Positions 1 to 55,064 of a stretch of DNA of 64,000 bases are shown in pieces. The stretch's first letter is position 1; each line of letters starts with the position of its first letter. Origin of the DNA: Blastocladiella emersonii ATCC 22665 (lineage: Eukaryota > Fungi > Blastocladiomycota); the NCBI GenBank assembly GCA_025594325.1, contig JANHCV010000001.1, positions 806,001-870,000 of the forward strand, given 5' to 3'. A program made the translations under genes and the position numbers. The notes beneath the pieces are model-generated. The model had not been told where the DNA came from, did not search any database, and saw nothing but the letters and a program-made list of their open reading frames with translations.

Positions 1-11
1 CGGGTGTTGCG

Positions 12-961
12 GTGCCGGCCGACGACTGGCCGCTGCTTCAGACCTTGACATCGGCGGTGCCAACGAACGTCTGTCGCGAGCAGCCAGTCTCGGCGCTCGA
101 ACACGCGTCGACGCATGGGGCACACCTGCACAACGTGTTGCTGTGTGGTTTCGGGGTCCATGCCCGCGATTTCATGCGCACCGTCGCCGACAACCGCGTC
201 GCCGGGTTTGGAAGTCGGTTCCTCGACGCCATGAAGACGCTTCTCGCGGCGTATCGTGGTCCCGATGCCCTTGCTCGACACGGTCTCGCCAACGGCGACG
301 ACCACGCGCTCGTCATCGTCCTGTGGGACGCCAACACGGTGTCGGCGACGGCCGACCAGATCGCGGCCATAGACGAGCCGTGGTTCGACACGCATGTGTG
401 CGCGAGTGCTGCCAAACAGGCCGAGGTACGCTCTTCCGAGGGCGAGCGTGACCTGCTCGACTGGGACTGACTTTGTACGACGCACGGTAGTGAAACGCCG
501 TCACGGGCAAGCGCAGCAGCCGCATCAAGTCGCTCACGGTGGACGCCGAGCCGTCGGCGGCGCTCAAGCACCGCGTTCTCGCGCACGTCGCGGCGGCGCT
601 CGGCTCGCCGCGCCCGCGGCCCGTGATCCTCATCTCGGACGGCACGATCTTCGACGGCGTCGAGGACACGGCGCGCCGCGAGCTCGGTCTGGACCGCCTG
701 GTGGCGGCGGCGGGGAACGGCAGCGATGCCGACCGGTGGGTCCTGCAGGTGCGCACGCCGTTGGCCGCGACCGTGATCATGTCGTGGGCCCAGATGTGCC
801 TCACGGACGGGCCCGACGAGGCCAAGGGCGAGTGGCGCGCGCGCGCCGCCGCGGCCGCGACCGAGGCATCGTCTCAGGCGTCCAAGAAGGCGACGTCCAA
901 GAAGGCGACGTCCAAGAAGGCGACGTCCAAGAAGGTGTTGTCGGACGGCAACCGTCACTGA
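12..961 (+). pseudogene. Family A (NYN/PIN-like) paralog, 3' part; exon 2 begins with TGA where paralogs have TGG
   Basis: VIVLWDANTV...PWFDTHV, then intron 426-490 (GTACGC...CTGAC...GGTAG), then RPVILISDGTIF...RWVLQVRTP. In-frame TGA at 491-493. Confidence 0.6.
880..935 (+). repeat. 15-bp coding tandem repeat (KKATS)n
   Basis: GACGTCCAAGAAGGC repeated about 3.5 times at the end of ORF 539..961. Confidence 0.85.
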
Positions 962-1127
962 ATGAAGAACTATTGTCCCCTTGTAAAGTCGCTCGCCTGA
1001 GTCGCAACGTCGTGAGCGCGGTGACGTAGTACGCTCATGCCGGCAGGCAGATGAAGCGGATCACGGTGGCCACGGCGACGGCGGCCGGGAGGGTTGGTGG
1101 TCCCACGCTGCTCCGTCGGCCGCGCCG

Positions 1128-1138
1128 GGTATAAAACG
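1128..1138 (+). promoter_or_regulatory. TATA box followed by a pyrimidine-rich leader
   Basis: GGTATAAAACG in a GC-rich context, followed by a CT-rich tract and an ATG. Confidence 0.45.
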
Positions 1139-1419
1139 CGTTCCCGCTCCCGCCCTCCTGCTCTCCCTCTCTCCCACGACGATCTCTTCTATCAAGAACA
1201 CTCACTACCTGCTATGCATCAACCACCGTGCTCTCAACCGCCGCGGGCAACACCACCACCTTCAACTGCCCGCCGGCGCCCCAGTGCTTGACGCGCGAGG
1301 AGTTCGTTGCCGCCGCGTGCGTCTCGTCCTCGAGGCGTGCACAATCGCTCTCTGGAATCTCTAGCTGACGGGCTACCCCCCTTGTCTAGTGTCGAGGCCG
1401 GCCTCGACCCCATCTAGCT

Positions 1420-2352
1420 CCTGTCCGCCATCGCCGCGGCGCCGGCTAGCGCTCCGGACCGCGTGCCGGTGACGCGGCCCGTGCTAGAGAAACTACGAGG
1501 GCTCGTCCAGTTCACGGACCCCGAGATCGTCATCCCCGTGCACGTCCTCGACGCGGCGTGAACCGACGCGCTCGCCGCGACGCTGCGCACCCTGCCGTCG
1601 CCCGACGCGCCGTGCCGCTTCGACGCGACGGTGTACACGTTTGACGCGGGGTTCGCCGAGACGCACGGCATCGGCCCGGCCGCGGCGCACGGCGCTGATG
1701 ACGGCGGCGCACGGGTTCATGTGCGTGTCGAGGCGCCGCCCGTCAACGAGCTGTTCCCGCTACGTTCCGAAGGTCAAGCTGGTCGCGCAGCGTGGATCCG
1801 CAGCTTAGAACTCGCTCGTGCCACCAGGACCCGACTACGACGACCACAACGACGAGGAGTACACCAAGTACGACTACTTGGACGGACCCGGCACGAGCAC
1901 CGTCCAGGCGATCCCGTCGCCGTCGCCGTTTTCGCCACGGCAGCAACTCCAGCACTACCACCAGCAGCAGCACCACCACCATCTGCAGGCGGAGCCGTGG
2001 CCGCCGCACGCCATGCTGCCCTCGCCCTCGCCGCCGCCACCGTCGCAGGCACCCGTCCAGTACGCGCACGTCGACCTCTCGGACGAGGACAAGCACAAGC
2101 ACCCCGAGGCCTACGTACGTGTCGTGGCAGGTGCTGACCTCGCTCGACTCGGCGGCGCAGACCGACACCCCGCTCGCGCCGCGGCCGCCGCTGACCGTGG
2201 TCGTGACCAAGTCGCTGCACGGCCGCAGCAGCATGCCCACCATCACGGGCACCAAGTACGAGCGCGGCGGCCAGGTGGTCGTCGTCACCGAGTGGGACGG
2301 CGAGATGCAGGCCGTCGACGCGTGGGTGCGGGCGCGCCGGGTTGAGCGGTGA
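1420..2352 (+). pseudogene. Family B paralog (homolog of the 8145..9885 gene) with a stop and frameshifts
   Basis: VHVLDAA*TDALA aligns with YVIESAWNDSLA; RVEAPPVNELFPLRSEGQAGR with RVQAAAVNELRPLSVDGQAGR; QVVVVTEWDGEMQAVDAWVR with QVVLTTERSGEAMAVDAFLR. The pieces lie in three frames. Confidence 0.75.
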
Positions 2353-2869
2353 TCTGGATGGGGATTGGATGGCGATTGGATAGGCTGAATACGACGATCG
2401 TGTGACTGCACGTCTCTCTCGACTCTTGGTGGACACTGACAGCTGTTGGGGATATCCGATGGGTGGGGCGAGCGCCGTCGCGAGGTGAAGGACGCGACGC
2501 GTTTCAGGTGGCGCCTCCGCCGAGCGACCGCCGCCGCCGACCCGACCTCCACTGCTTCTTCTCTCGCCGAAACGACGATTACCAGCACGCCGTCCATGTA
2601 ACCTTGAGCAAGCCGCTCCGCTGATCTCGGCCCACCATGCACTACTCGCGGCCCCGCCGACGTCGACGCGGGATCGCGCCGCGCTCGCCTTCCCCAACTC
2701 TCGGTCGACGCCGACCACGTCCTCGGACGCATCACACGCTCAACAGCCATGGATAGCGTACGTCGCTCGCGCAGCAGCACTGGGGATCATGGAGTGTCAA
2801 GGCTAACGAGGCAGCCTCGCGACCCCAGCCGGCATGTAGCACGCACCGACGCACGCCGCGAGCGACCGA

Positions 2870-4199
2870 GTGCACTTCTTCGAGCCTGCGGCGGCAGCCG
2901 AATACGTGTCCATCCTGCCTGTCGTGCTCGACCACCTCGATCCCGCCCGGCACCCGCTGCAGCTTTCCTGCCAGAACCTCGGTTCCCTCGACTGTGTGAT
3001 GCGCGGCGCCGGCTCGGCCCCGACGGCTGCGTATCTCGACAAGGCCTACGATGTGGCGGCGCGCGACCTGCGCGGGGATCCTGCGGCCGCCGACCGCTTC
3101 GAGGCCCGCTGCGTGCCCAACCGCGCCCCGCGGCGTTGCGGTCCCACAACCCGCTCCCGCTCCCGCTCCCGCTCGACGCGCCCATCCACGGGTGCATCCT
3201 GCTGGCCTACGCCGCCCTGGAGTGGGTTCCCGCGGCGCCATCGGTCGTCGTGGGCAGCGGCAACGCTTCGTCCAACGTGCTTGCGCTCGTGGCCGCGCCG
3301 CCCGAGGTCCTCCACCTGCGCCGCCTGCTGTCGACCGCCGTGGCCGCGCCGCCCGAGGTCCTCCACCCGCGCCGCCTGCTGTGCTGTCGACTGCATCGGT
3401 GAGCCCCGCGTGGCGCGGCGGCGCGCCGACGTGCCACACCTGCTCGACCTCGTCCCGCGGCTCATTGACTCGGCCGCCGCCGACGGCGTTCACGCCCGAG
3501 GCGCAGCTACTCGACGCCGTGCCGCGCGCGGGCACAGCATCCACACCGGCGGCTTCACGGCCGCGCTGCGCGACATCCGCGCCGAGATGGTTTGGCGCCG
3601 TGGTCGCCTCGCCGCTTACCGCGTCTGCGCCGCGTCCGCGCCGCAACTGGCCGGTCGGCTTCGACTTCGCGCGGCGGCCGCAGTCGTCCGGTGCTCATCA
3701 TGATCGACGGCGACACGGTGTCGCTCACCGCGGACCGGATCGCCACCGTCAGCACGTTGTGGTTCGAGGCACGCGTGTACGGGACCGGTGCGAGCCGGGT
3801 CAAGGTACGCCACCCGTGCGGGCTCGGACGGTTGTGTGAGACGAGCGACTAACTCTCGGATTTCGATTGTCCGGTAGTCGGCTTTGCTGGTGGCTCGGGC
3901 GCGACCACATCACGTACCACCACGTCGCGGCGGCGCCCACCAAGGCCGTCAGCTTCCACACGCTCGACGTCCTCGTCCTGCACCTTGCCACGCAGCCCGT
4001 CCAGCCCGTGATCATCGTGTTGGTCGACAACAAGTGGCGGGCGCGCGCGCTTGCCGCCGTAGGTGCCGCGCCTGCAGTCGGTGCATCGACCATCACCGAG
4101 GGAGGATTCGAGGGTCATTGTTGCGCGTCACCTCGCGGAATGTGTGTTTTGAATGTTACGGAGCAAGGCTTTCGTTGTCGTTTCGTGCCACACAGATAG
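2870..4199 (+). pseudogene. Family A (NYN/PIN-like) paralog, frameshifted
   Basis: VLIMIDGDTVSLTADRIATVSTLWFEARVYGTGASRVK, a GTACGC intron (CTAAC branch, GGTAG acceptor) at the same position as in the paralogs, then QPVQPVIIVLVD. Confidence 0.6.
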
Positions 4200-4594
4200 G
4201 GACCTCCGCGCGCCACCCCGACCGCCTTCCTCGTTGCGCCAGTGCTCGCTCGAGCCGCACCGGGTACTCGCACGCCCGTGGCCACGGCCGCGGCCATGGC
4301 GAGCCCGCTGCGGGCGGCGGAGGAACACGAGGTCACAACGATCGATCGAGGCCAAGGCGGCAGCCACTGCGCCACCGCCACCGCCACACTGACGCGTTCT
4401 TCACTTCGCGTGTATCACCCGGTCCCAGCCAGGCAGCAGCGCCGGCTCGCCGCGGCGCTGCCGCCGCCGCTGCCGCCCTGATCGCCCACTCTCACCTCGG
4501 CGCCAGCGGACAGCCGACTCCGCCCGACGCCCCATGTAACTTGACGCACTTGACTCGACGCGCCGGGCTCACGCACACACTCATTGCTTCCACC

Positions 4595-5632
4595 ATGTCC
4601 TACTTGCGCAAGGTGTTCGTCACGGTCATGACCTGGGATCGGCCCTTCGACCAGGACAAGTACATTCTGATCCGCAATGAGCGAGGCGGCACCTACCGCA
4701 GCGTCATGCCCAACCCCAAGGAGGTGCCCTACTTCGACCTCGACGCCGCCTACTACATTCCGATCAAGCCGCGGCGCCGCACACTCGACGACTACGACGG
4801 GCTCGCCATCATTGTGCCGTCACCGCCGGCCAACCTGACGACGTGGACCATGCTGCGCATCAGCAACGAGTCGGACGACGTGATTCACGTCACGGTCCTC
4901 GGGCGCCGCTCATCGCTCGGCCTCGCCAGTTTCGTGCTTCAGGCGTGGCAGGAGCCCAAGGTCGTCGACCTCGGCCTCCTGGCGCACATCCGGTTCCCGC
5001 TGCGGCTCGAGGTGCGCCGCGCCCGTCACCGCGGGTCCGACCAGTACGCGGTCGAGGGCGACGACCAGTACCTCGCGACGCACCTGCTCGGCACATTCTG
5101 GCTCAAGCTGAGCAAGGTCCGGCCGCCCAACGCCGAGTCGCTCGACGAGCTCCTGGCCAGCGACCCCTACGGGCCCGAACCGCTGTGCGCGCCGGCCACG
5201 GCCATATCCAACCCCCAACTCCTCATCACGTACCCGGAGCGGCCAGCCTCGTCATCGGCCCAAGTGCACGGTGCCGCGGGCCCCGGCGTGGAGCGCACCG
5301 TCCTTAGCCGCTTCGACACGCGGAAGGTTGCCGCCGCCGCGGTGCCCGCCCCGTCCTACCGACCCCCGCCGCTCCTGGCCTACGACCACGACGAGAGCCA
5401 TGGGCGCTTCTACGGTCCAGAGCTGGAGCCGGAGCCAGGTGCTGCAGGCGAGCCGACCTCGACGGTGCCGATGGAGCTCCGCGTGCGTCGGCTGGTCGCG
5501 GGCGACCCGCGCGCCGACAACAGCGTCCTCGCGGGCTTCGTCGGCGACAGCAGTGGGTCGCTCGAGATGCCGGACGGTTGCTGGCGGAGCGGAGCCTGCG
5601 CGCCCTCGCCACCCGCCAACCCGCCGCTTTGA
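4595..5632 (+). CDS. Hypothetical protein (345 aa, MSYLRKVFVTVMTW...)
   Basis: CACCATG start, protein-like composition and strong GC3 bias; the upstream part of ORF 3884..5632 looks non-coding. Confidence 0.7.
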   Translation: MSYLRKVFVTVMTWDRPFDQDKYILIRNERGGTYRSVMPNPKEVPYFDLDAAYYIPIKPRRRTLDDYDGLAIIVPSPPANLTTWTMLRISNESDDVIHVTVLGRRSSLGLASFVLQAWQEPKVVDLGLLAHIRFPLRLEVRRARHRGSDQYAVEGDDQYLATHLLGTFWLKLSKVRPPNAESLDELLASDPYGPEPLCAPATAISNPQLLITYPERPASSSAQVHGAAGPGVERTVLSRFDTRKVAAAAVPAPSYRPPPLLAYDHDESHGRFYGPELEPEPGAAGEPTSTVPMELRVRRLVAGDPRADNSVLAGFVGDSSGSLEMPDGCWRSGACAPSPPANPPL

Positions 5633-5962
5633 TGTCTTGAATGATGCCGCCCGCTTCCTCTTGCACACCCATCTCTCCCTCCCCTCCCTCCCTCGCTGGA
5701 CTACTCTCGACATAATACACTGGCGGCACGACCGCCCGTTGGCTTTGAATCGCCGTGTCGCTCGCGTCCGCTCGCCCGACGGAGGCAACGGTTCACTCGG
5801 GCGCAGGCCGTTGGGCTGTGGCCGCGGGCGCGACGCGAAGCCACGTGCGCCGCGTCGCGTGAGACCAGCCCATCGCCCTCGCCGTGTGCCCGCTCCTTCG
5901 CTCTCCCCTCGCTCGCACTCATAGGCCCAACGACGGCCTCACTACAACCACAACTCGCTGCA

Positions 5963-6231
5963 ATGGATCCGAAAACCACGCAAAACGTAAGGACATGCCG
6001 TCTCGGGCCCGCAGCGAACGCAGCCGCCGCCCACGCGCGTGTCCCGCGGGAGGGACCCGCGAAAACCATCACGATGCCACTGTCTGACGCTGCGCCGACC
6101 CCGTAGCCGACGCAGGAGCTGCCGGACCAGCAGCCGGGTGGCGGGCCGCTGGCGGTGGTCCCGGCCGCGACCAACGCCAACCTCGGCGCGGCAGCGCCCA
6201 TCCTCAAGTACACCCTCGACCCCGACGAGCT

Positions 6232-6274
<43 letters not shown>

Positions 6275-7823
6275 ACCGCGACCGCTCCCTCGGTCACGTA
6301 CGGCATGCGCGCTTTCGAGGTGGCGACGCTCATCGCTCGCACCGGAGTCCCGGACTTTCCTCGGGTCCAGTCCACGCTCAACGAGACGTATGTCGCGTTT
6401 CTCGCTGCCGGCAACCCGCCGTCGCCCACGTTCTCGATCGACGCCAAGATGCACACCTGCCAGATGCTCCTGTACGCCGTGTCCGCGCACGGATGCGCTG
6501 ACGCGCGCATCACCGAGTTGTGCAAAGCGCGTAAGTCGCGCAGCTCGAAACGGTCGCGCGGCTCGACCTCGGGACCAGCGGTGGCGCCACCTGCTCCGGC
6601 ACCGGCACCGGCACCTACGCCGGCCGTGGGCACCGAGGCCGACGCGGTGGCGGCGGCAGAGGCCCAGCTGCGCGCAGCGGTTGCCGCGGCCGAGGCGTAC
6701 ATGGGCGACGCCGTCTCCGATTTCCCCGCATTCGGGATCCCCAACGACCCGATTGCCACTGCCGCTGAGATGGCGCAGCTGCAGCTGTTGCTGGCGAGGG
6801 CGCCGGCGAACCCGGCGTGGACCCACGGCGACGCGCTGCAGCTGCTGTCCACGATCAAGGGCATCCTCGCGATCATCACGGCGGGCACGCTGTTGAAGTC
6901 GGGCGCCGTGGTGCTCGCGTACTTTGTCGAATTGGCCCGCAACAACCTGCCGCTCCACGTGGCTGGCGTCGAGGTCGCTGCTCAGTACCACGTCCATCTC
7001 CAGCTGTACACGCGCGTCGCCGCCGACGACATGATGGCGTGGCACGCGCATGTGGCGACGGCGGCGCGGCTGTCGCCCAAGCAGCAGCTCCGCGAAGCGC
7101 TGCAGCACCGCTTCCAAGTCGACGCCGGCGCCGCGACGCGCGCGCTGTCCACGCTGAACGTCGACATGATTGGGCCCTCAATGCTGCGCGCCATGGTCCT
7201 CATGCTCGGGCTGTGCCGTGGGCTGGCCATCGCTCCGCAGCAGGTGCCAGCCCCCGCGCACGAGCGCGTCTCCGTCCGGTACCTGTGGGACGGAGACAAC
7301 GTGGTCCCAACCCGCGACGAGCTCGAGGCGCTCGACAAGCCGTGGTCCCAGGTGCACGTGTATGTGCTCACATCGGGCACGAGTCGGGTACGCGGCGTTC
7401 GACTGCGCAACAAAGAGGAACGACACTAACGCGTGCATGTGTGCGCGCGGGTAGTGGACCAACAAGCTCTCCAACCCGCGCCCCCGCAACCTGCTGCTCC
7501 ACGACCTCGGCCGCGACATCAAGGAGTCGGCCGACTACTACGCGCAGGCGCGGTTGGTGGCGAGCCGGGCCGAGCTGTGCGCGCGGACCCACCCGCTCTT
7601 TCTCGTACTCGTGTCGCACGACGGCTCTTTCGAGGTGATGGAGAGCCTCGCGCACGCCAACTTCGGGGTGGCGGGCGCGGGCGGCGGCGCGCTTGGGCCG
7701 GCGACTGAGTCGGGATGCTGGGTGGTGCGCGTGCGCACGCCGGCGCATGCAATTGCGCTCACTATGTGGATGGAAATGTGTCTGTCGAGCGGCGCCGGCG
7801 AGGGCTTCGGGTCGGCTGGGTAG
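5963..7823 (+). CDS. Family A (NYN/PIN-like) gene, apparently intact, 3 exons (5963-5986, 6107-7387, 7455-7823)
   Basis: Introns 5987-6106 (GTAAGG...CTGAC...TAG) and 7388-7454 (GTACGC...CTAAC...TAG) splice in frame. Motifs RYLWDGDNV...KPWSQVHVY and FLVLVSHDGSF...CWVVRVRTP. Confidence 0.75.
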
Positions 7824-8144: not shown

Positions 8145-9885
8145 ATGCATTTGCTCACTCGTGGCGACGGCCCCGCCTCGCCGCCGCCGCCGCCTCGGCC
8201 GGGCCCGCGCGCCGCGGCTGCCCCGCTCCACCCAGCGGCAACCGACGCCGCGCCGGCCGTCACGGGCGCCGCTTCGAGTGCAGCCGCGCCAGCACCTGCT
8301 CCTGCTCCTGCTCTCGGCCGCACGCCCGCCCTGCCGCTCGCGCCGGGCCCGGCCCACGGCCCCGTCTCGACCACTCGGGCGACGGCCACCGTAAGCGCGT
8401 TGCCCCGCTCCAGCACGTACTTCCCCGCCCAGCAGCGCACCCAGCAGCGCGCTCAGCGCCTCGCCCAGCATCGCAGCCACCCGTACCGCCGGCCGAGACC
8501 CACGCCGTCGACTCGCGCCGCGACAGCAGGGCGTGCCGCACCGCCGCCCGCGCCGCCTGCACCCGCGCCGCCTGCGCCCGCGCCATCTGTGCCCGCGCCA
8601 TCTGTGCCCGCGCCATCTGTGCCCGCACCATCTGTGCCCGCGCCATCTGTGCCCGCGCCATCTGTGCCCTCGAACCCGCCGCCTCTGCCACCTGTGCCCT
8701 CGAACCTGCCGCCCGCGCCGCCAAGACCACAGCAGCCACCACACTTTGCCCTCCGTTTCCCATTGGAAACGCTCTGCATATCACGCTTTGCGTTCCGCTT
8801 CCGCCTCAAGGACGTGCCGCGCGGCGCCAGCGTCATCAAGCCGTTTCTGGATACCATGTACGTGCCTGATCGGCGGCCAGGTCCCGCCAACGTGGGCCTC
8901 CGTGGCGTGCTCGCTCCCTTACCCCCCGTCTCACACTGCCACCTGTAGCGACGACGTGATTCGCAAACTCGCACCCCAGGGTGCCACGTCCAACACCGCA
9001 CCGTCCCTCGACTGCATCCTGCTACGGACTCGGTGTTTTGTGCACCTCATGGACCTGCCGCGCACCCTTGTTGCCCCGACCGCGTTCTACGTCTACGTGA
9101 TCGAATCGGCGTGGAACGACTCGCTCGCGTACGTTCTGCTGGCTCCGCTGCCGCGCGGCGCCCGCTGGTGGTACATCATCACCATTGTGACGACGGACCC
9201 CACGTTTGCCGCCAAGCCCGCGATCGCTGCCCTCCTTGCGGCGTACGGCGACAACGCGCCGCATGACGGGCGCCACCGAGTTCGGGTTCGCGTCCAAGCG
9301 GCTGCAGTGAACGAGCTGCGCCCGCTGTCCGTGGACGGGCAAGCCGGGCGCGGTGAGGCGATCCGCGCACTCGAAGCGCTGCTGCCGCCCGCACCTCCGC
9401 TCGCGCGTGCACCCGCAATGGCAGCAGTGGCCGGTGCGACATGGCCGCCGCCGGCGCACCCGTACCGGGTTCGGTACCACCAGCAGCAGGCGCAGCAGCA
9501 GGCGCAGCAGCAGGCACAGCAGCAGCAGGTGCAGCGGCCCACCATCTACGCGCCGCGTGGCCTTTCCAGGAAACCGGCTAAGGAGTGGGTCCAGTACAAT
9601 GTCTCGCTCCAGATCCAGGTGGCGTCGCCGCTGCGCAAGGCGCGGGGCGGGAGTGGGGACGGTTCCACGTCGCCGTGGCCCGCGCCGCCAGCGCTGCTGC
9701 CTCTGCCGCCGCCGCCCGCAACGTCCCCCGTTCCCGTGACGCTGGTCGTGGTCCCGGCGCTGGTGGAGGGCATGGAGCATCTCACGCACCTCATGCACCT
9801 GCCCAGCGCTCAAGTGGTCCTGACCACGGAACGGAGCGGCGAGGCCATGGCGGTGGACGCCTTCCTGCGGACGTGGTTTGTTTGA
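8145..9885 (+). CDS. Family B hypothetical protein with a Pro-rich N-terminus, 2 exons (8145-8857, 8949-9885)
   Basis: Intron 8858-8948 (GTACGT...TAG) joins ORFs 8112..8948 and 8533..9885 in frame (550 codons); homologous to 1420-2352. Confidence 0.7.
8560..8700 (+). repeat. 15-bp coding tandem repeat (PAPSV)n
   Basis: GCCCGCGCCATCTGT repeated about 6 times. Confidence 0.9.
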
Positions 9886-25538: not shown

Positions 25539-26856
25539 TCAAAGACGGGTCCCACGAGCGGCCATGACGCGCCTGTACTCGGTCCAAAGAACATTTGCGA
25601 TGCGGTTCCGAAGCGAGATACCGCGCTGACGAGCTCCGTCCAGCGAGGCCTCGAGGACAGCGGCCTCGTCGTCCTCCTCGTTCTCGTCGTTCAGGGGCTC
25701 GCGCCCACGCACACGCGCCTCACGCGCCGCGTCCCGCGCGCGCCGGAGCTCCGTCTCGGCGTCGCAAAAGAAGGCGTCGCCGCCTTGGTTCCACTTTTTG
25801 ATCATGTTGTGCAGCGTGCAGAGCGCGTACACAAGCTTGACTTGAGTCTTGATTGGGTAGGCCGCGCCAATCGAGAGGACGCGGAACCGCTTCTTGAGCA
25901 CGCCAAAGATACGCTCAACAGAGTTGCGGAGCGACGCGTGACGCAGATTGAAAAGCTCCTCGCGGTTCTTAACTCTACGTACGTTGATGAAGCGGATGAG
26001 ATGGCGCCAACGTGATGGTCATGGCAGTGAGAACGTACCCATCCTTGCCGCGGGCAAACTCGCGAAGATGATAGCGGGTACTGCGGAAGGGCACGATGAT
26101 GGACGTGCGGTTTGCGTAGCCGCCGTCGGCGAGGTAGAAGCGGCCGGCGGGGATCTTGAACCCACGGGCGAAGGCGTCCGAGAGCACGCGCGAGTCATGC
26201 GCCTTGCCCTCCCACCCTGCGAGAACGTAGGTGAAGTTCAAGTCAAAGTCGCAGGCAGCGAGGACATTTGAGTATATGGTCCCCTTGCGGTTTCGGAACG
26301 AGTCGTGAAGCTTAGTGGGCACAACAAACGGGATGTGCGTTCCGTCAAGCGCGCCGACCGCGTTCTGGAACGGAGCGTATTTCGGGTCGTGGGCGATGCG
26401 CTCATGCACGGGCGTAGAATCGGACGGCTGGACAATGAACTCGGGCATCAGGCGGTACAGAGCGTCGAGCACTTGCTTCAGAACCCTGGACGCGGTCTCG
26501 CCAGAGATTTGGAACCGCTCCCTGAGGTTGCGGTTGGTGCTGCCCTCGCCGGCCATGACAAGAAAAACCATGAAGCGCGCCTCGACGGACAGCTCGCGGC
26601 CGTCGGCGAGAAGGCCACGGTCGCGGAACAGGCGGCAGATGGCCTTGAAGGTCTCGCGGGGCATACGGGCGATTTCCGAAAAACGCGTTTCGCTGTTGCA
26701 CGTCAGCAGCTCTTGAACCCACGACTCGCCAGAAAGCGTGGACGTGCGGATAGGCTCCCACGAGCGGCGCTCGTTGCGCGCAGCGAGACGTCGCAGGAGA
26801 GCGAGGGCGGCTGTGAGCATTAGGCCGCGCAGCTTGCGGTTGTATCCCTTGCCCAT
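25539..26856 (-). CDS. PIF/Harbinger (DDE_Tnp_4 / IS5-like) transposase, intact, intron 25975-26038
   Basis: GALDGTHI, YLADGGY, ELFNLRHASLRNSVERIFGVLKKRF; the spliced ORF is 418 codons without an internal stop. Confidence 0.93.
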
Positions 26857-31040: not shown

Positions 31041-34000
31041 GTCAAGAACCGGCATGGGCGGCGCAAGCGCCCGCCGTTGACCCCGCCAACCAGGCAAGCC
31101 CATGACGTGGCCCTGGCAAGCACGGTCGCGGCGCTCGCTTCGTTGCCCACCCCCGCAGCAACCCAAACGGATGTTGATTTTTCTGTTGAGAAGGAGCTGA
31201 ATGAGAACGCAGTCGCTCACTACCTGGCATTGGTCTTTGCACTAGATCACTGTGACCGACACCTGTACCTCAAAGCCGCGCTTGGTGACGCGAGCGGCGC
31301 AGGCCGGCCAGCCGCTGTGGCGCACATGATCAACTCGGGCGCGCCCAACTCGTTCATCAACCGTCGGCTCGCCGAGGCCATGGGAATGAAGCTGATCCCG
31401 CTCGCGCGCCCGCGGACCATGGGCAACGCCGACGGGACGCCACTTGCAAGTGGAGCCATCACGCACAAGGTCCGCGCTGTCGTTGCCGTGCTGCGAGGCG
31501 TTGCCCACCTGCAACGGCGCGCCGCGGGCCTCGGGTCCCACGTCCTACCTACACACGCGTTTGGTCGTCGCGCCGTGCACCCAATCCCGCAGTGGGCAAG
31601 GGCAAAGGCCCCGCGTAGCCGCGCGTACGCGGGCCTGCCATGCCACCATTGCGTGACGCTCGACCTGCTCGTCATTGGCTCCCCCGTGTTCCCAACGATG
31701 CTTGGTCTCGACTGGTTCGACGAGACCGGGGCTACGCTGTGCCTGGGAAAGGAGCAGCGCCACATCCACGTCCGCTGACGCTGCCGCGGTCATTGCAGCG
31801 CCGAGCCTTGCGCAGACGTGGGCAGCAATGACCCCGCCAAGATCGAGGGCCACTGCGACCACAGCTGTGCCGCGGCCGCCACATGCTCTCTCGGCGCCGT
31901 CAACGCCGCCAAAACCACGTATCGCGCCGACGCGGATTCGCTCGAGTGGAGCGATTGAGACGGACCGCCCGACGAAACGCCGACCACAAGCCCACCCGCA
32001 CTGCCTGACCTGCCGCCCAAGATCGCCGAGTTCGCGTCCGTGTTCGACGACGCGGGCGCCAAGGAACTCCCCAAATCACGGCCCGACTACGACTGCAGCA
32101 TCAAGCTCGAGGACAGCAAGGCGCCGCCGTTCCTGCCCATCTACGCGCTGACCAAGGCTGAGTCCGAGGAGCTGCGCAAGACCATTGACGACCTGCTTGC
32201 GCGCGGCTTCATCCGGCCGTCCAAGTCGCCCGCCAGCGCGCCGGTCATCTTTGTGCCCAAGAAGGACGGGTCGAAGCGCATGTGCATCGACTACCAACGG
32301 CTCAACGCCATCACAATCAAGAACCGACACCCGCTGCCACTCATCCACAAGATCCTTGACCGCGTCCAGGGCGCCAAGGTGTTCTCCAAGCTCGACCTGC
32401 GCGGCGCGTACAACCTCGTCCGCATCAAGCCTGGCGACGAGTGGAAGACGGCGTTCCGCACCAAGTACGGCCACTTCGAGTACCTCGTGATGCCGTTTGG
32501 CCTGTCGAACGCGCCAGCCGTTTTTCAGCACCTGGTCAACGACATCTTCCGCGACCTCATTGACCGCGGCGTCCTGGTGTATCTGGACGACGTGTTCATC
32601 TATTCGAAGACCCGCGAGGAGAACGCCCAAATCCTCGCCGAGGTGCTGCGACGGATGCGCGACCACGGCCTGTACGCGCGCCGCGACAAGTGCGAGTTCT
32701 TCACCGACAAGACCGAGTACCTGGGCCACGTCGTGTCGGCGACAGGCGTCGCCATGGACCAGGCCAAGATCGCGGCCGTCCTCGAGTGGCCGAGACCCAC
32801 GTCGGTCCGTGACGTGCAGAAGTTCCTCAGGTTCGCTAACTACTACCGCCGCTTCATCAAGGAATACTTGGCCATCGCGCTCCCGTTGCATCGACTCACG
32901 CGCAAGGACGTTGCATGGAAGTGGACCGACATCGAGGAGAAGGCGTTTGAGTTGCTCAAGTCGGCGTTCACCTCGCAGCCCGTGCTCGCCCATCCCGACC
33001 CGCTCAAGCCGTTCATCGTCAAGACGGACGCCTCCAACTTCGCTCTCGGCTGCGTCCTCCTGCAACGCGACGACGATGGAGCTCATCTGCACCCAGTCGC
33101 TTACCACTTGCAGTCGCTGAAAGGGCCAGAGCTCAACTACCCAATCTTTGACAAGGAACTGCTCGCCATCAAGGTCGCGTTTGAGGTGTGGCGACACCAC
33201 CTCGAGGGCGCGCGCTGCCCCGTTGAGGTCCGCACCAACCACCGCAATCTCGAGTACTTCCGCTCGGCCAAGGTCGAGTCGCAGCGGCACGCTTGGTGGT
33301 CGCTCTTCTTTGACCGGTTCGACTTCCACATCTCGTACGTGCCCGGCAAGGACAACGGCCGCGCGGATGCGCTGTTGCGGCGTCCCGACTACGAGCGCGA
33401 GTACGACCCGCAGCTCGGGCAGCCGCTGCTTGCGGCCAAGGTTGTTGCTGCGGCCATGTCGGACACGTCGAGTCGCGCCACCAAGTCGTTCGCGCTGCCG
33501 CCCAACCCGCCCAAGGTGCCCAAGGAACCGGGCATCGGTGAAGAGCCGACGGGGACGTTGGCCGTTAGGAGGGGGATGGCTGACGATGAGTTTGCTGCTT
33601 GGGTTTGCGGTGATCCGGAGCAATACCCCTCGCTGCGCTTCGACAACAACGGGCTCCTGTGGTTCAACAAGCGCCTGTACGTGCCCGACGGCGTGGCACG
33701 CACCCGCGTCCTTGAGCAGGAGCACAACGCGCCAATCTTGGGCCACCCCGGCCGCCGCAAGACGTTTGAGAAGATCGCGGCCAAGTACTGGTGGCCAACG
33801 TGGCGCCGCGACGTTGAGGCCTTCATTGAGTCGTGCGTGCGCTGCCAGCAGTGCAAGCCGTTGCGTCAGCTCCCCTTGGGCCTGCTGCAGCTGCTACCGA
33901 TCCCGCGCCGCCCGTGGAGCTCAATCTCCGTCAACTTCATGGTCATCCTGCCGACCAGCGACGGCATGACGTGCATCATGGTTGTTGTCGACCGCCTGAC

Positions 34001-35062
34001 CAAGATGGCCCACGTTGTCGCCATGCCCGGCGTTCCGACAGCCGAGGGCATGGCCAACGCCGTGATTGAGCACGTTGTCTGGCATCACGGGCTGCCCGAC
34101 AAGATCGTCTTGGACCGCGGGACCCAGTTTACGTCGCAGTACTGGGCGCGACTGTGCAAGACGCTTGGGATCAAGCGCAAGCTGTCGACGGCGTTCCACC
34201 CGCAGACCGATGGCAGACCGAGCGCATCAACAAGTCGTTTGAGCAGTATCTGCGCCTGTACCTCGACCGCCACCAGGACTCGTGGCGCTCAATGCTGCTC
34301 GTCGCCGAGATCGCCTACAACAACGTGCAGCACGAGTCGATGGGCAAGACGCCGTTCGAGGCCAACTACAGGTTTGGGCCCAAGTTCACGGACCCGCCGC
34401 CATTGGCCGAGGGTATTGGCGAGGGCGCCAACAAGGTTGTCAACTTTGCGCAACGTATTGGCCAGGTCCAGACCAAAATGCGCCAGCACCTCAAGCGCGC
34501 ACGGGCTCAACAGAAGCAGTACGCCGACCAACGCCGCCGCAAGGCGCCGCAGTACCACGTCGACCAGATGGTCCTGCTCTCGGCCAAGAACCTGCGCCGT
34601 GTCGAGTTGTCAAACAAGCTCGCGCCGCTCTACCTGGGTCCGTTCCGCGTCAAGCGCGTCATTGGCGTGACCAACGTCAAGCTTGAGTTGCCCGAGGGCA
34701 TGGAGCGCGTCCACCCCGTCTTCCACGTCTCGCTTGTCAAGCCATTTGTTGCGTTGGACGAGCGTCGGTTCCCCAGTCGTCACGTACTGCCGCCTGACCC
34801 CATCATCCGCAACGACGAGGAGTACTACTTCGTCGAGCAGATCCTTGACTCCAAGTACATCGGGTCCAGCCGCAACAAGACCGTGTGGTACCTCGTCCAC
34901 TGGCGCGGGTACCCAATCGACAAGGCGACGTGGCAAGACGACTCAGACGACATGCGCCGCCTCGAGGCCGTCGCGCAGTTCTACGCGGCGCACCCCGACA
35001 AACCTCGACCGCCGCGACGGGCCGCGGGCGGGAGGGGGAGGTGGTGTCACGGCGCAGCGTGA
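31000..35062 (+). pseudogene. pol: Pol: protease, RT, RNase H, integrase, chromodomain; inactivated
   Basis: INSGA (catalytic D to N), YLDD, TDAS, GHPG/CxxC, YFVEQILDS...YLVHWRGY...TW. Two in-frame TGA between protease and RT, and a 1-bp deletion near 34215. Confidence 0.93.
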
Positions 35063-36345: not shown

Positions 36346-38950
36346 CTAGTTTTTGCGCTGCTTCTTGGACTGCTGCTGCTGCTGCTTTCTCATGTCCGCC
36401 GCGCGCTTCTGCTTGCAGTACCTTATGCTAGCCAGCCGCTTGCGCTCCCTCCGCTCGGCATCCTTCTCTCCTGCGATCTTGCGGTGCTCCTTCACTGCTT
36501 GGCAAAACAGCTCAGAGACTCGCGCGTCATGCTGCTCGACAGTTTGGCCATGAACAAACGCCTCGCTGGTCAGCTTGTCAAGCGCTTGTAGCTGCAAGTC
36601 CTTGGCCACTGCGCGCGGATCCGGCACCATGACTTCAAAGACACTTTCCGGGATCGGCTTGAGGATCCACAGGAACGCCCAGTTGCGAAGCCGCAACAGC
36701 GCAACGTACAGCGATGCGCCCTTGATCAAACCCAACGCGCCAGACGGGCACGGGTCCATCAGGATGATGGCGTTCTTGGTCAAACCCTGGACCCCATGCA
36801 CAGTCATCGCGAAGGCGGGAACGATTGGGAACTGCACGATCTGCACCTTCTTGTGGCCTTTGTAGTGCTTGTGCGTCTTGAAGTCCTTGACCATCGTTGC
36901 GCAAATCGCATTCGCCTCGAGGTCCTTGTTGTTGTTGCGCTCGCGCGACGTCAGGCCGTTCTCCTTGTAGAGAAAGCTGTCCGAGTGCATGGCGAGCGGA
37001 ACGTCTGGCCAATCTGCCGGCATACCCGGGAAGCGAGGGCCGGACGGCGCGTCGGCAGGTCGATCCACACGGTGGGCGGCTCGCGCGATGGGTGGAACAT
37101 GTGGTTGGCCGTCTCGGTGAACGTCGTGCCAGGGAACCAGTCGATGTGGTGCACGACGCCGATGGCGCCGTTCGCGCAGCCCTTGGCCACGCACTGGTTG
37201 AGCTTGACGCGCACCTCTATGCCGACGAAGGCCTCGAGAATGGCGAGCAAACCCCCAGTGACCAAGTCGGGCTCCTTGGCGATGCGCCACAGGTCCGTTT
37301 CGCCAATGCCACTCTTGACGGTTACGCCGTTCTGCACCCGCTCGCGCGTGATGTTGGCCTTGATCTGAAACACGACGCGATCTGGGTCCGCTGCGGCGAG
37401 CCGCGTGTACAGCAGGTTGAAGGCGTGGCGCGTCAGGTTGTCGGGCGCGATGACCATGAGTCCGGGCGTTTCAAGGATCTTCTTGATCTCGTTCTTGCCC
37501 TGCTCCATGTTCAGCTGCTGCAGTCGAGCGGTCGTGCGCAAGTCGAGTAGGTTGCGCAGCTCGACGGAGGCCTTTTCGAGGCGGAACGCGTCCAAACATC
37601 TGCCCCAAGTCGGGTCGTCGACGAACCGGTTGCTGTGCACAAGGCGGACGACGCGTTGCGCGCGCCAGTACGCGAGCTGGCCCACGTGCTTCCATTTTGC
37701 GCCCGTTGTATCGTACGCGAGCAGCCGCTCGTAGAACGAGTCCTGCGCGTCGTCAAGCACGTTGGGCAGCTGGAACAGGGGCGTTCCGGTCACAGGAGGA
37801 AGCTGCAAATGATCGCCAGCGAGCATGACAATGCAGCCGCCAAACAGCTCGTCGCACCGACGCAGCGCGCGGAGGCTCGCGTCGATACGTCCGAGCAGCA
37901 CCGCGTTGCACATGGAGAACTCGTCGATGATCACAGCGTGGCGTCCCAGCCACGCGCTAGCAACGGCCGAGTCGGTGCGCATGCGCCCGATGTCAGGGCT
38001 GAGCCTGTCACCCTTGAGCGCGAGCTGGAACGCTGCGTGAATCGTCGCGCCGCCAATGTTGGCCGCCGCGATGCCGGTCATGGCCATGACCATGAGCGAG
38101 GTTTCGCGATTCCAGGACGCGAGAAAGTACCGGATGCCGTCAACGACGCGCAACTTGCCCATGCCGCCCAAGCCGGTGAGGAAGATGGGCGAGCGATCCT
38201 TGCTCATGGGCGGGAGCGATGCAATGGCCGGCGCGTGCAGTTGGCCGCGGCCCGACGCGTGCGCGTCAGTGCTGCAAGACGCGACCGCCTCAGCGACACT
38301 GTTGTCGCCGCCGATGAACGTGGCGATGAGCGGCATGAGGAAGAGGACGAACGCGTGGTGCTGCTCCTTGTTGAGGTTGAACTTGAGCGACACCTGCGCC
38401 AGGGTGGCGTAGGCGGGCGTGTGCTTGGTGCGCTGCTCCTCCTTGGTCCATTTGTCGCCGCGCGTCGAGTAGGCAAAGTTGCTGATCGAGTCCGCGGCCT
38501 TGATGACAAGAAACCAGTTTCGCGCTGCAGGCGATTCCAAGGACCGCGCTGCAAAGGTGGTGCGCCACACGTCAATCGCGAGCGCGGCTGGTGGATCTGC
38601 CACGTCATCAACGACGTTTTCTGGGTCGTCGCCGATCTGCGGTCCAACGGCTTGATCAGCGGAAGCTGCTGCGCCAACGAGCAGCGACTGCCCGCCCTGC
38701 GGTGCGACGGGGGCAGCTGCTGCTGCGGCGGCGGGCGCCGTTGCAGTCGCCGAAGACTTGTGGTGCCGCGCCATGAACTTTTTCAGCGTATTCACCGAGA
38801 CGCGCGTTGGGAGCGTTGGCGTTGGCACCGGCGCGTTGATGTTGAACTGCCGCACAGGAGGCAGCCGCAGGTTGGCGGTCAGGTCTGCAGCAGCACCAGG
38901 GATCAGCGTAGAGTTGCCGCCAATCAGAACCGCCCATGGCAGTGCGCGGT
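36346..38950 (-). pseudogene. Pif1-family helicase of a Helitron-like element, one frameshift, degenerate Walker A
   Basis: LNKEQHHAF, FLTGLGGMGKL, IIDEFSM, GDHLQLPPV, FPIVPAFAMTVHGVQG, YVALLRLR. Confidence 0.9.
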
Positions 38951-39637
38951 ATTGTGGGGGGAAATCCGGTTCCAGCATCGCAAATTTCGCGAATTTTTGT
39001 TGACGGGCGGTACCGGTTTTGAAAAAATTTGGAGCCTTGACGGACGGTTTTTTGGAGGCCCGGTATTTCTCAGCTGTAGCTTTAGCGAAGCTGAGTTTCT
39101 GTGGGAGCAATTGAAACCTATCAGGCACATCAACCTTGCTCTTGTGGTCACATGAGTGGCTCAGTGACCGTTTTCGATTTTCGTCGCGCGACGAGTTCCG
39201 TTGTTTTTCGCTTTCACTTCATTCCGACCCCTGCAACGTAAATCTGGATTGTGCTTTGCCTAGTCCCCAACAGTTCGAGGCTGTTCACTTCGAGGGGAGC
39301 GAGGTCCTGTGCAGCGGTTCCCGTGCGCAGGCGTGACGAGACGGACCTCGCTCGAAACTGACTGTTCAGCATCACGTGACCTGACATCAATCCTGTCTGG
39401 CTGCATTTTCGCGCCCTCGGAAGCTCTCCCACTCCACGCCCGCTCGCTCGCGCTTGCCGCTGCTCTTCAACGCTCTTTGAGACCTCCTGTGCTGACCAGC
39501 TCTTTACCCGCCACTCCTACCCCATGCAGCGCTTAATACTTCGCGATCCGGCGTCTGCCTGGCCGCCATGCGGCCACATATAAAGGCGCGCGGGCCGCCG
39601 CTGACAGTCCTTGCTCTCCTCCACCACTCGCAACACC

Positions 39638-44104: not shown

Positions 44105-45360
44105 TCAGGAGCCAAGTACTAGGTAGTGGTTGCCTGCGCCAGACGTTGCGGTCAAGCGGCCATCGTGTTTTGCGCGTCGCACCGAGTTCTGCGCCGTGAT
44201 GAGGGCCTGGTCGCTCCAGTCGTTGAGCTGGCCTGGGTGCTGGCCCAGTACGACGTCTGCTCGCCGCGAGCCGAGGTACCTGATCACGCGCTGCGAGACG
44301 ATGCAGTTGCGCAGGTCCTGGAGCACGTTGAGGAAGCTCGCGTCGCCCGACTGCCGCATCTGCTGCACAAGGAAGAAGACCGAGTCAAAGGCGAGCCACT
44401 GATCGCGACCAATGTTGGCGTCAGCTCGAGTTCTGCTGACCGCTGGCCGCTCCTTGCGCTTGGACGCGCGCTTCTTCTGCTGCTGCTGCTGAGGCTCGCC
44501 GTCGACCTGCATCCAGTCGCCATCATGAGCTGCATCCGCCTTGGGTTCGGGTGCGCGTTCGACCAGCTGCTCGGATGGAACCGTGAGCGAGCGGGCCATG
44601 ACGGGCTCAAACTGGAAAAAGTCGCCAAACGCGAGGACGTGCAGGCCGCCAAACGGACGATGGTCGCGGCTCGGGTATAGCGCGTCGAAGCGCAAGTGCA
44701 TTGCGGCGAACAGCTCGGCGCTGACCATGGAGATCTCGTCGAGGAGGACAAACTTGACGGGGCGGAAAGAGGCCTCGAGCTCGGCCTTGGCTTTGTCGCT
44801 CATCGGCTTGGTCGCCAAAATGGCGGTACCAATACCGCACATGGCGTGGATCTTGGAGCCGCCAATTAGCGCCGTGGCGACGCCGGTTGGCACCCAGATC
44901 TTGAGCCATGAGCCGCAGCCCTTGGCGACGAACATGTCGCGGATCGAGTTGATGACGCGACACTTGCCCATGCCCGCCTTGTTGTGGACCAGCATGAGGA
45001 GCTGCTTGACGTCCGCATCGCCGCGCTTGATGGCATTGAGCGTCGACTCGACGTGCTCAACGACGCGGCGCTGCTCAAAATTGAGCCCGTGAAGGTACGG
45101 AGCGAGATGCTCCTGCTGCACAAGCTGCACCTGGACGGCTGGCGGTGCGACACCATTGTCTGCTTGAACGAGTCGAGCGCGAGATGGCTCCGCCGAGCGT
45201 TCTGCGGCAAACTAACGGGAAAGCTTACCAGGCGACGTGTTCACGTAGTCGCGGAAGTTGTTGATTTACCATGGTTGGTTGCTGCCCTGCTGGAGCGTGT
45301 TCTTGAAGAGATCGGGTGTCTGCGACCGCGTCTCGTTGTGGACCGGCATCACCTCGTTGA
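44105..45360 (-). pseudogene. Pif1-family helicase N-terminal half (third, divergent copy), truncated
   Basis: LNFEQRRVV, KAGMGKC, PTGVATALIGG, LLDEISMV, FGGLHVLAFGDFFQFEPV, LVQQMRQSGD. Confidence 0.88.
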
Positions 45361-52162: not shown

Positions 52163-53384
52163 CAGCAGGTTGCGGGGGCGCGGGTTGGAGAGCTTGTTGG
52201 TCCACTACCCGCGCGCACACATGCACGCGTTAGTGTCGTTCCTCTTTGTTGCGCAGTCGAACGCCGCGTACCCGACTCGTGCCCGATGTGAGCACATACA
52301 CGTGCACCTGGGACCACGGCTTGTCGAGCGCCTCGAGCTCGTCGCGGGTTGGGACCACGTTGTCTCCGTCCCACAGGTACCGGACGGAGACGCGCTCGTG
52401 CGCGGGGGCTGGCACCTGCTGCGGAGCGATGGCCAGCCCACGGCACAGCCCGAGCATGAGGACCATGGCGCGCAGCATTGAGGGCCCAATCATGTCGACG
52501 TTCAGCGTGGACAGCGCGCGCGTCGCGGCGCCGGCGTCGACTTGGAAGCGGTGCTGCAGCGCTTCGCGGAGCTGCTGCTTGGGCGACAGCCGCGCCGCCG
52601 TCGCCACATGCGCGTGCCACGCCATCATGTCGTCGGCGGCGACGCGCGTGTACAGCTGGAGATGGACGTGGTACTGAGCAGCGACCTCGACGCCAGCCAC
52701 GTGGAGCGGCAGGTTGTTGCGGGCCAATTCGACAAAGTACGCGAGCACCACGGCGCCCGACTTCAACAGCGTGCCCGCCGTGATGATCGCGAGGATGCCC
52801 TTGATCGTGGACAGCAGCTGCAGCGCGTCGCCGTGGGTCCACGCCGGGTTCGCCGGCGCCCTCGCCAGCAACAGCTGCAGCTGCGCCATCTCAGCGGCAG
52901 TGGCAATCGGGTCGTTGGGGATCCCGAATGCGGGGAAATCGGAGACGGCGTCGCCCATGTACGCCTCGGCCGCGGCAACCGCTGCGCGCAGCTGGGCCTC
53001 TGCCGCCGCCACCGCGTCGGCCTCGGTGCCCACGGCCGGCGTAGGTGCCGGTGCCGGTGCCGGAGCAGGTGGCGCCACCGCTGGTCCCGAGGTCGAGCCG
53101 CGCGACCGTTTCGAGCTGCGCGACTTACGCGCTTTGCACAACTCGGTGATGCGCGCGTCAGCGCATCCGTGCGCGGACACGGCGTACAGGAGCATCTGGC
53201 AGGTGTGCATCTTGGCGTCGATCGAGAACGTGGGCGACGGCGGGTTGCCGGCAGCGAGAAACGCGACATACGTCTCGTTGAGCGTGGACTGGACCCGAGG
53301 AAAGTCCGGGACTCCGGTGCGAGCGATGAGCGTCGCCACCTCGAAAGCGCGCATGCCGTACGTGACCGAGGGAGCGGTCGCGGT

Positions 53385-53427
<43 letters not shown>

Positions 53428-53696
53428 AGCTCGTCGGGGTCGAGGGTGTACTTGAGGATGGGCGCTGCCGCGCCGAGGTTGGCGTTGGTCGCGGCCGGGA
53501 CCACCGCCAGCGGCCCGCCACCCGGCTGCTGGTCCGGCAGCTCCTGCGTCGGCTACGGGGTCGGCGCAGCGTCAGACAGTGGCATCGTGATGGTTTTCGC
53601 GGGTCCCTCCCGCGGGACACGCGCGTGGGCGGCGGCTGCGTTCGCTGCGGGCCCGAGACGGCATGTCCTTACGTTTTGCGTGGTTTTCGGATCCAT
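52163..53696 (-). pseudogene. Duplicate of the 5963..7823 family A gene, truncated 42 bp into exon 3
   Basis: Mirror copy; after RNLL it reads into ACC-derived sequence in a non-ACC frame. Confidence 0.8.
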
Positions 53697-54026
53697 TGCA
53701 GCGAGTTGTGGTTGTAGTGAGGCCGTCGTTGGGCCTATGAGTGCGAGCGAGGGGAGAGCGAAGGAGCGGGCACACGGCGAGGGCGATGGGCTGGTCTCAC
53801 GCGACGCGGCGCACGTGGCTTCGCGTCGCGCCCGCGGCCACAGCCCAACGGCCTGCGCCCGAGTGAACCGTTGCCTCCGTCGGGCGAGCGGACGCGAGCG
53901 ACACGGCGATTCAAAGCCAACGGGCGGTCGTGCCGCCAGTGTATTATGTCGAGAGTAGTCCAGCGAGGGAGGGAGGGGAGGGAGAGATGGGTGTGCAAGA
54001 GGAAGCGGGCGGCATCATTCAAGACA

Positions 54027-55064
54027 TCAAAGCGGCGGGTTGGCGGGTGGCGAGGGCGCGCAGGCTCCGCTCCGCCAGCAACCGTCCGGCATCTCGAGCG
54101 ACCCACTGCTGTCGCCGACGAAGCCCGCGAGGACGCTGTTGTCGGCGCGCGGGTCGCCCGCGACCAGCCGACGCACGCGGAGCTCCATCGGCACCGTCGA
54201 GGTCGGCTCGCCTGCAGCACCTGGCTCCGGCTCCAGCTCTGGACCGTAGAAGCGCCCATGGCTCTCGTCGTGGTCGTAGGCCAGGAGCGGCGGGGGTCGG
54301 TAGGACGGGGCGGGCACCGCGGCGGCGGCAACCTTCCGCGTGTCGAAGCGGCTAAGGACGGTGCGCTCCACGCCGGGGCCCGCGGCACCGTGCACTTGGG
54401 CCGATGACGAGGCTGGCCGCTCCGGGTACGTGATGAGGAGTTGGGGGTTGGATATGGCCGTGGCCGGCGCGCACAGCGGTTCGGGCCCGTAGGGGTCGCT
54501 GGCCAGGAGCTCGTCGAGCGACTCGGCGTTGGGCGGCCGGACCTTGCTCAGCTTGAGCCAGAATGTGCCGAGCAGGTGCGTCGCGAGGTACTGGTCGTCG
54601 CCCTCGACCGCGTACTGGTCGGACCCGCGGTGACGGGCGCGGCGCACCTCGAGCCGCAGCGGGAACCGGATGTGCGCCAGGAGGCCGAGGTCGACGACCT
54701 TGGGCTCCTGCCACGCCTGAAGCACGAAACTGGCGAGGCCGAGCGATGAGCGGCGCCCGAGGACCGTGACGTGAATCACGTCGTCCGACTCGTTGCTGAT
54801 GCGCAGCATGGTCCACGTCGTCAGGTTGGCCGGCGGTGACGGCACAATGATGGCGAGCCCGTCGTAGTCGTCGAGTGTGCGGCGCCGCGGCTTGATCGGA
54901 ATGTAGTAGGCGGCGTCGAGGTCGAAGTAGGGCACCTCCTTGGGGTTGGGCATGACGCTGCGGTAGGTGCCGCCTCGCTCATTGCGGATCAGAATGTACT
55001 TGTCCTGGTCGAAGGGCCGATCCCAGGTCATGACCGTGACGAACACCTTGCGCAAGTAGGACAT
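54027..55064 (-). CDS. Duplicate of the 4595..5632 hypothetical protein
   Basis: Identical translation in the ORF track. Confidence 0.7.
   Translation of the reverse strand: MSYLRKVFVTVMTWDRPFDQDKYILIRNERGGTYRSVMPNPKEVPYFDLDAAYYIPIKPRRRTLDDYDGLAIIVPSPPANLTTWTMLRISNESDDVIHVTVLGRRSSLGLASFVLQAWQEPKVVDLGLLAHIRFPLRLEVRRARHRGSDQYAVEGDDQYLATHLLGTFWLKLSKVRPPNAESLDELLASDPYGPEPLCAPATAISNPQLLITYPERPASSSAQVHGAAGPGVERTVLSRFDTRKVAAAAVPAPSYRPPPLLAYDHDESHGRFYGPELEPEPGAAGEPTSTVPMELRVRRLVAGDPRADNSVLAGFVGDSSGSLEMPDGCWRSGACAPSPPANPPL

Follow-up and report, generated by a model that had tools for sequence, protein, structure and literature searches.

The 64,000-nucleotide stretch analysed here (positions 806,001 to 870,000 of contig 1, JANHCV010000001.1, of Blastocladiella emersonii ATCC 22665; hereafter the window) carries four distinct members, copies A to D, of a gene family that we call family A. 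We read it as a genus-restricted, quickly diverging family with a C-terminal domain homologous to, but far diverged from, NYN domains of the MARF1/limkain-b1 type, and give this reading a probability of roughly 0.7. The broader proposition that the domain is homologous to NYN/PIN-like domains appears highly probable when all lines of evidence are combined. An initial annotation of this DNA, made from the sequence alone, had proposed NYN/PIN-like genes; the idea is borne out by the predicted fold, by two structure aligners that both place MARF1 NYN first, by the only profile match in the PDB and by language-model features, whereas sequence-profile comparison gave it little, with no family model matching at E = 1 and an hhalign probability of only 32%.

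A first AlphaFold2 (AF2) model, of the full-length protein, was poor in its N-terminal half and showed five strand-helix units at residues 245-395; its Foldseek output was noise, because residues 1-185 fall below 50 in pLDDT (predicted local distance difference test). The domain alone was modelled with AF2 from the intron-less gene on contig 16 (L002:1114-1623, minus strand); the family supplied the alignment, and the model has a pLDDT of 77.7, a predicted template modelling (TM) score, pTM, of 0.76 and five alternating strand-helix units. The top three PDB matches of this model in Foldseek are human and mouse MARF1 NYN domains (E 8.7e-4 to 3e-3, probability 1.00), aligned over 150/151 columns with TM 0.54/0.60, while the next match has TMq 0.33. 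VIA-align compared the model with 48,161 representative chains without recourse to Foldseek; here too MARF1 NYN comes out on top (Z 10.6, root-mean-square deviation 3.0 Å, 121/150 residues), with the LabA-like structure 2qip (Z 8.8) and Rae1/YacP (5mq8, Z 8.2) both in the top five. AlphaFold with Foldseek, which the initial annotation had named among its checks, gives a PIN-like domain with MARF1 NYN as best match, and the alpha/beta/alpha arrangement around a central parallel sheet is present in the predicted model.

Sequence comparison, which draws on no structural model, points the same way. A hidden Markov model (HMM) of the family searched against 177,635 PDB sequences has human MARF1 NYN as its sole match at E <= 10 (E 0.26), aligning the family's 'k.sADy' and 'vvLVS.D.sF' to KNAADDK (AADD) and VVLVSTDVNF of MARF1. 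Since the MARF1 active site consists of Asp358, 426, 427 and 452, the aligned MARF1 residues are Asp426 and Asp452; the D426A/D427A double mutant has strongly reduced RNase activity (Nishimura et al. 2018, PMC6294520). By language-model features, the whole protein lies nearest to NYN clusters (0.85) and the isolated domain nearest to clusters of PIN7, PF18475 of the PIN-like clan (0.89; 187/256 shared features; recognition 3026). PIN7 proteins are bacterial, 146-186 residues long and without the family's N-terminal region, and gave no HMM match.

The likeness to MARF1 NYN (PF01936; PDB 6FDL and 5YAA, Z 10.6/10.4 over 121 of about 150 residues) comes with 18-19% identity and extends to motif order: a first beta strand ending in W-D, 'A-A/S-D' on a helix, and 'hhLVS-x-D-x-(N/S)-F' after the fourth strand. 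In motif 3 the family shares with MARF1 a single Asp with N or S after it, in place of the bacterial D-x-D. Unlike MARF1 NYN, the family escapes detection by PF01936, half of its members lack one or more catalytic residues, and it is confined to one fungal genus. MARF1 continues from NYN into RRM and LOTUS/OST-HTH domains; neither RRM nor LOTUS was found among the 8 family proteins available, which have instead their own upstream helical region and a conserved 'AWAEMC..GGS..KAEWRA' tail. The LabA-like/DUF88 NYN domain (2QIP) and Rae1/YacP (5MQ8) share the predicted fold at the lower scores given above. These bacterial and phage NYN proteins and Rae1/YacP are only 13-17% identical to the family, whose 'VLVS.D.SF' hhalign matches to the NYN 'VLVSGDSDF', with the second Asp of GDxDF replaced by Ser. 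The set used for that comparison comprised 11 phage open reading frames (ORFs) fished out with a degenerate VLVSGDSDF.P pattern, of which 10 were scanned and 10/10 exceeded the PF01936 cut-off; it is a weak comparison, because the set is biased by selection with the same motif. A greedy hhalign alignment to it is colinear through motifs 1 and 2.

Matches to the family occur at 14 places in the B. emersonii genome, which represent about 11 distinct loci: eight on contig 1 (at 490, 545, 788, 806/865, 810/862, 813/858, 867 and 926 kb) and one each on contigs 4, 16 and 17, so that 8 of the roughly 11 fall within 490-930 kb of contig 1. Paralogy across genomic loci is significant (E 1e-7 to 1e-54), at 25-45% identity. 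A phmmer/HMMER search of 1.84 billion representative proteins with the copy D protein (P0001) returned 8 proteins, 7 from B. emersonii and 1 from B. britannica, and word-index protein searches with copy D exon 1, the family alignment and the P0002 domain returned family members only. The family does appear lineage-specific, as had been claimed. The B. britannica gene lies between the CNOT1 and cytochrome b5/IFT122 genes, and within B. emersonii the contig 16 gene is closest to it. A comparison of its neighbourhood with the B. emersonii loci showed no synteny: in B. emersonii, CNOT1 maps to 3.97 Mb of contig 1, a long way from any family member.

Retention of the catalytic residues varies widely among loci. 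Reading motifs 1, 2 and 3 in order, three of the four Asp are kept at five B. emersonii loci, namely copy C (WDGDN, SADY, VSHDGSF), contig 16 (WDGDN, SADY, VSRDRSF), contig 17 (WDGDN, SADY, VSGDGSF), contig 4 (WDGDN, AADH, VSADNSF) and 545 kb (WDLDN, IADY, VSGDGSF), and in the B. britannica gene (WDADN, SADY, VSHDRSF). All five B. emersonii genes have an extra Asp two residues past the first. The 490-kb gene (WDLGN, VVMD, VSDNDSF) may also keep three, its motif 2 Asp being one position off, which would make six of the 11 genomic loci. The remaining loci have LDGDN, TANA and VSKDKSF (926 kb) and WDGDS, AINY and VSTDESS (788 kb), while copy D (WDANL, SVVLK, VSGNAAF) and copy A (WDANT, SAALK, ISDGTIF) keep the first Asp only. 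The earlier statement that catalytic acids are only partly kept therefore holds, with three of four at best.

Several observations weigh against an NYN ancestry or against the family as we describe it. Pfam searches of every exon ORF and 8 full proteins, and NCBIfam searches of the 8 proteins, gave nothing relevant: no model in either collection matches any member at E <= 1, PF01936 included. No member reaches the PF01936 gathering cut-off, so Pfam family membership as defined does not apply, and a PF01936 scan of the six-frame genome yielded no candidate. A phmmer search of PDB with P0001 found no match, and the full-length family profile found a single irrelevant one. The MARF1 profile match (E 0.26) is not significant alone; hhalign against the phage NYN set gives P 4.8e-4 and a probability of 32%, with only motif 3 confidently aligned; the alignment underlying the domain model is shallow (10 rows); and the Asp427 equivalent, unlike that of MARF1, is Tyr or His in members that retain the Asp426 equivalent. 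In VIA-align, Z values of 8-9 are also reached by unrelated Rossmann-like domains from other families. In addition, for most pairs the ratio of nonsynonymous to synonymous substitution rates (dN/dS) is 0.5-0.9, near neutral, with dS unreliable at the approximately 70% GC of the inverted-repeat arms described below.

The domain might instead belong among the generic Rossmann-like alpha/beta folds (CARF-like, HAD-like or FNR-type nucleotide-binding) and have no nuclease ancestry, its NYN likeness being a product of convergence and chance motifs. Such an origin would account for the failure of every NYN model to match by sequence, and for the near-tie that VIA-align gives with the full-length model among a Csm6 CARF domain (Z 9.7), a HAD phosphatase (Z 9.1) and MARF1 (Z 9.0); an FNR-like domain still reaches Z 9.2 with the domain model. 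We consider it unlikely: the domain model puts MARF1 NYN first in both aligners, with two more NYN structures in the top five; Csm6 CARF falls to Z 7.6-7.8 with that model, against 10.6 for MARF1 NYN, and is not the best match; the sole PDB profile match is MARF1 NYN with catalytic Asp aligned; and the language-model neighbours all belong to the NYN/PIN7 clan.

All four paralogs that the initial annotation had placed in the window are present, at or near the positions proposed for them, and are significantly related: tblastn with the annotated copy D protein as query detects A at E 4e-49, C at E 2e-14 and B at E 1e-7. The motifs listed for them were also confirmed, as hhhWD(A/G)(N/D) or WDGDN, PWF/PWS..V.VY, hhLhS(D/G)..F and W.h.VRT. 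One pairing did not survive, however: the segments at 12-961 and 58698-60225, which had been listed together as a paralog, are a single gene, copy A, seen in both arms of an inverted repeat.

The left arm of this repeat occupies positions 1-7496 of the window, the reverse complement of 52163-59658, and continues 1,034 nt past the left window edge; the right arm spans 52163-60692, for a total arm length of 8,530 nt. The window therefore carries A, B and the greater part of C in duplicate. Over the 7,496 nt inside the window the arms differ by a single mismatch (A against G at position 4029), which points to very recent duplication or arm-to-arm gene conversion. We considered whether the repeat is an artefact of the assembly, a PacBio HiFi genome of 32.7 Mb in 21 contigs (Leonard et al. 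2022, PMC9730499). The internal mismatch speaks against this, as does the end of the right arm inside a truncated acetyl-CoA carboxylase paralog whose intact counterpart is on contig 18; judged from the assembled sequence rather than from reads, the duplication is more likely genuine and recent.

Copy D, outside the repeat, is intact (61147-62586, minus strand; H9P43_000296, protein P0001, 419 amino acids (aa)). It has three exons (62572-62586, 61626-62468 and 61147-61548, stop included), with the family intron at 61549-61625 (77 nt, GTACGC..CTAAC..GGTAG), and its exon-1 ORF is 100% identical to the NCBI protein H9P43_000296. Of the four catalytic Asp, three are missing from its domain.

Copy C (plus strand) lies at 6764-7823 in an ORF that begins at or before 6155, and is open across the intron (exon to 7387, intron 7388-7454, exon 2 7455-7823). 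Its mirror copy (52163-53504, minus strand) breaks off 42 nt into exon 2, with exon 1 and the intron still present, and adjoins the 5'-truncated carboxylase paralog.

Copy A is complete in the right arm (58698-60111, minus strand, family intron 59169-59233; annotated model P0003) and clipped by the window edge in the left (1-961, plus strand; exon to 425, intron 426-490, exon 2 491-961). With the family splice sites, its exon 2 opens with TGA where other copies have TGG. The annotated model bypasses this codon by using a different donor and acceptor, at the cost of about 25 domain residues.

Copy B is a degenerate relic (3592-4199, plus strand; mirror at 55460-56067). The end of its exon 1 (..IDGDT..WFEARVY..) reaches 3804 and its intron spans 3805-3877; exon 2 starts with TCG, the homologous frame is displaced by one base, motif 3 is degraded (VLVDNKW) and the family C-terminus is absent. 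Past copy B, window positions 3884-5632 hold a 582-aa open frame with a protein-like stretch of about 300 residues from an internal Met (MSYLRKVF...). The expectation of at least two disabled copies is borne out, by an in-frame TGA in A, a frameshift in B and the truncation of the C mirror.

All four copies are interrupted at one shared phase-0 position by an intron that opens with GTACGC, closes with GGTAG and contains a CTAAC or CTGAC branch signal. The introns had been described as identical; site, phase and end sequences indeed agree, but the interiors differ, as do the lengths (65, 73, 67 and 77 nt in A, B, C and D). Because GTACG is a general donor in this genome, used also by unrelated introns of the window, the shared ends are largely species splice consensus, and it is the shared position and phase that carry the weight. 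The site is retained at 10/11 loci genome-wide and in the B. britannica gene; the exception is the contig 16 gene, from which the intron was lost precisely.

Conservation extends over about 340 residues of the family alignment, beyond the C-terminal domain. The N-termini had been said to differ between copies, which is true of the extreme N-termini (only the first 60-270 residues vary), but the helical region of about 190 residues preceding the domain is conserved family-wide, with an invariant His and Gly ('LH..G'). Rates were estimated by the Nei-Gojobori method, exon by exon. For the closest pair (490 kb and 545 kb, 72% identical) dN/dS is 0.45-0.47; the values of 0.5-0.9 for more distant pairs are unreliable because of strong codon bias and near-saturation. 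The description as fast-evolving, which the closest pair upholds, may fairly be put as fast evolution under weak purifying selection; positive selection is not supported by dN/dS.

The distant-pair ratios nearing 1, the visibly broken copies and a GC content of about 70%, at which long ORFs arise in every frame, could also suggest that the whole family is non-functional, a set of relics or of gene-prediction artefacts with chance long ORFs. This seems very improbable, given protein conservation over about 340 residues across contigs and two species, retention of the splice site with its donor, branch and acceptor signals at 10 loci, a domain that AF2 folds confidently, and a dN/dS of about 0.46 for the closest pair.

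The 44.7-kb spacer between the arms is rich in transposons, in line with the earlier remark that disabled copies lie beside such DNA. It includes a Ty3-type pol ORF with reverse transcriptase, RNase H and integrase (32040-34670), two PIF1-helicase (Helitron-like) ORFs (36951-39128 and 44105-45130) and a DDE_Tnp_4 (Harbinger-type) transposase ORF (25975-26856). GC content is 68-70% in the family-carrying parts and 57-63% in the middle of the window. The acetyl-CoA carboxylase paralog (46703 to about 52160, minus strand) breaks off precisely at the arm end, within its biotin-carboxylase domain, and shares 88% identity with the full-length gene of contig 18. About 40 carboxylase fragments occur genome-wide, often covering residues 323-397 of the query (an ORF with the carboxyl-transferase domain); their dispersal suggests gene-fragment capture by a mobile element.

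At no fewer than six loci, a second conserved family, the B module, is found 1-1.5 kb downstream of the family A gene and in the same orientation. In the window it lies after copy A (1418-2349, plus strand), where gene models P0003 and P0004 join A and B, and after copy C (8956-9885, plus strand), where it forms a single open frame containing a Q-rich low-complexity insert; elsewhere in the genome it is found at L019:4788-5502, L020:6794-7564, L021:6082-7224 and L018:4889-5104. It is marked by the motifs 'IPVHV..MW.K', 'RHRVRV...PPVN.L.PL..GQAGR' and 'VTVVLT...QVVL.T....AVDAWFRT', separated by variable low-complexity inserts, and has no Pfam match. We considered it as a second NYN-like copy, but hhalign of the A domain against B shows no similarity. 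Possibly A and B belong to one gene, with B as its downstream domain. The model P0005, annotated as 'Endopolyphosphatase' (1,014 aa; contig 17, about 743 kb; L007/L018), has the look of a gene-model fusion of a Metallophos/ASMase_C phosphoesterase with a family A gene.

Another conceivable role for the A gene with its B module is that of a selfish or conflict cassette in two parts (a toxin-antidote pair, a meiotic driver or cargo carried by a mobile element not yet recognised), amplified and now decaying, from which clustering, palindrome and dead copies would all follow. The same-strand trailing of A by B fits this, as do the location of most copies in a 440-kb tract of contig 1 beside Ty3, Helitron-like and Harbinger-like sequences, the near-perfect inverted duplication, and quick divergence with frequent lesions. 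Yet the pair has no transposase, reverse transcriptase or terminal repeats of its own, the paralogs at 25-45% identity are much older than usual element copies, and the B. britannica gene has housekeeping neighbours (CNOT1, IFT122, cytochrome b5) and no B module that could be detected close to it. We regard a cassette as improbable, and for the defence, toxin or meiotic-drive role raised in the initial annotation the analysis gives no support. A more elaborate form must be held highly doubtful: a Blastocladiella-specific two-component conflict system, in which a nuclease or pseudo-nuclease acts with its partner in defence, as toxin and antidote or in drive, and whose copies would have multiplied within a palindromic accessory stretch of contig 1, with gene conversion between the arms sparing some while others decay.

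Each protein consists of a variable N-terminus, the helical region of about 190 residues without known relatives, and the C-terminal domain of about 150 residues, whose fold, under the preferred reading of a divergent NYN family, would be of the PIN-like metal-dependent endoribonuclease type. We infer nuclease activity from fold and residues, and any cellular role is inferred too. Members in which three of the four Asp survive, among them copy C, the genes on contigs 16 and 17 and that of B. britannica, probably bind metal and cut RNA. Copy D, which keeps the first Asp only and yet has an open frame, would most likely be a non-catalytic pseudo-nuclease that binds RNA or a partner. Copy A, copy B and the C mirror are probably decaying duplicates from a recent segmental duplication in a transposon-rich region.

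We take the family to be a divergent form of a nuclease fold already known; it opens no new kind of mechanism. It offers a testable annotation for the hypothetical proteins H9P43_000296, _004057, _000272, _000319 and _000187, and draws attention to a near-perfect 8.5-kb palindrome and to the pairing of A and B genes. Likely active, likely inactive and broken copies stand side by side as a natural series. Blastocladiella emersonii is a model for phototaxis, and in this early-diverging fungus the family would add to the PIN-like/NYN superfamily a clade that is invisible to current family models.

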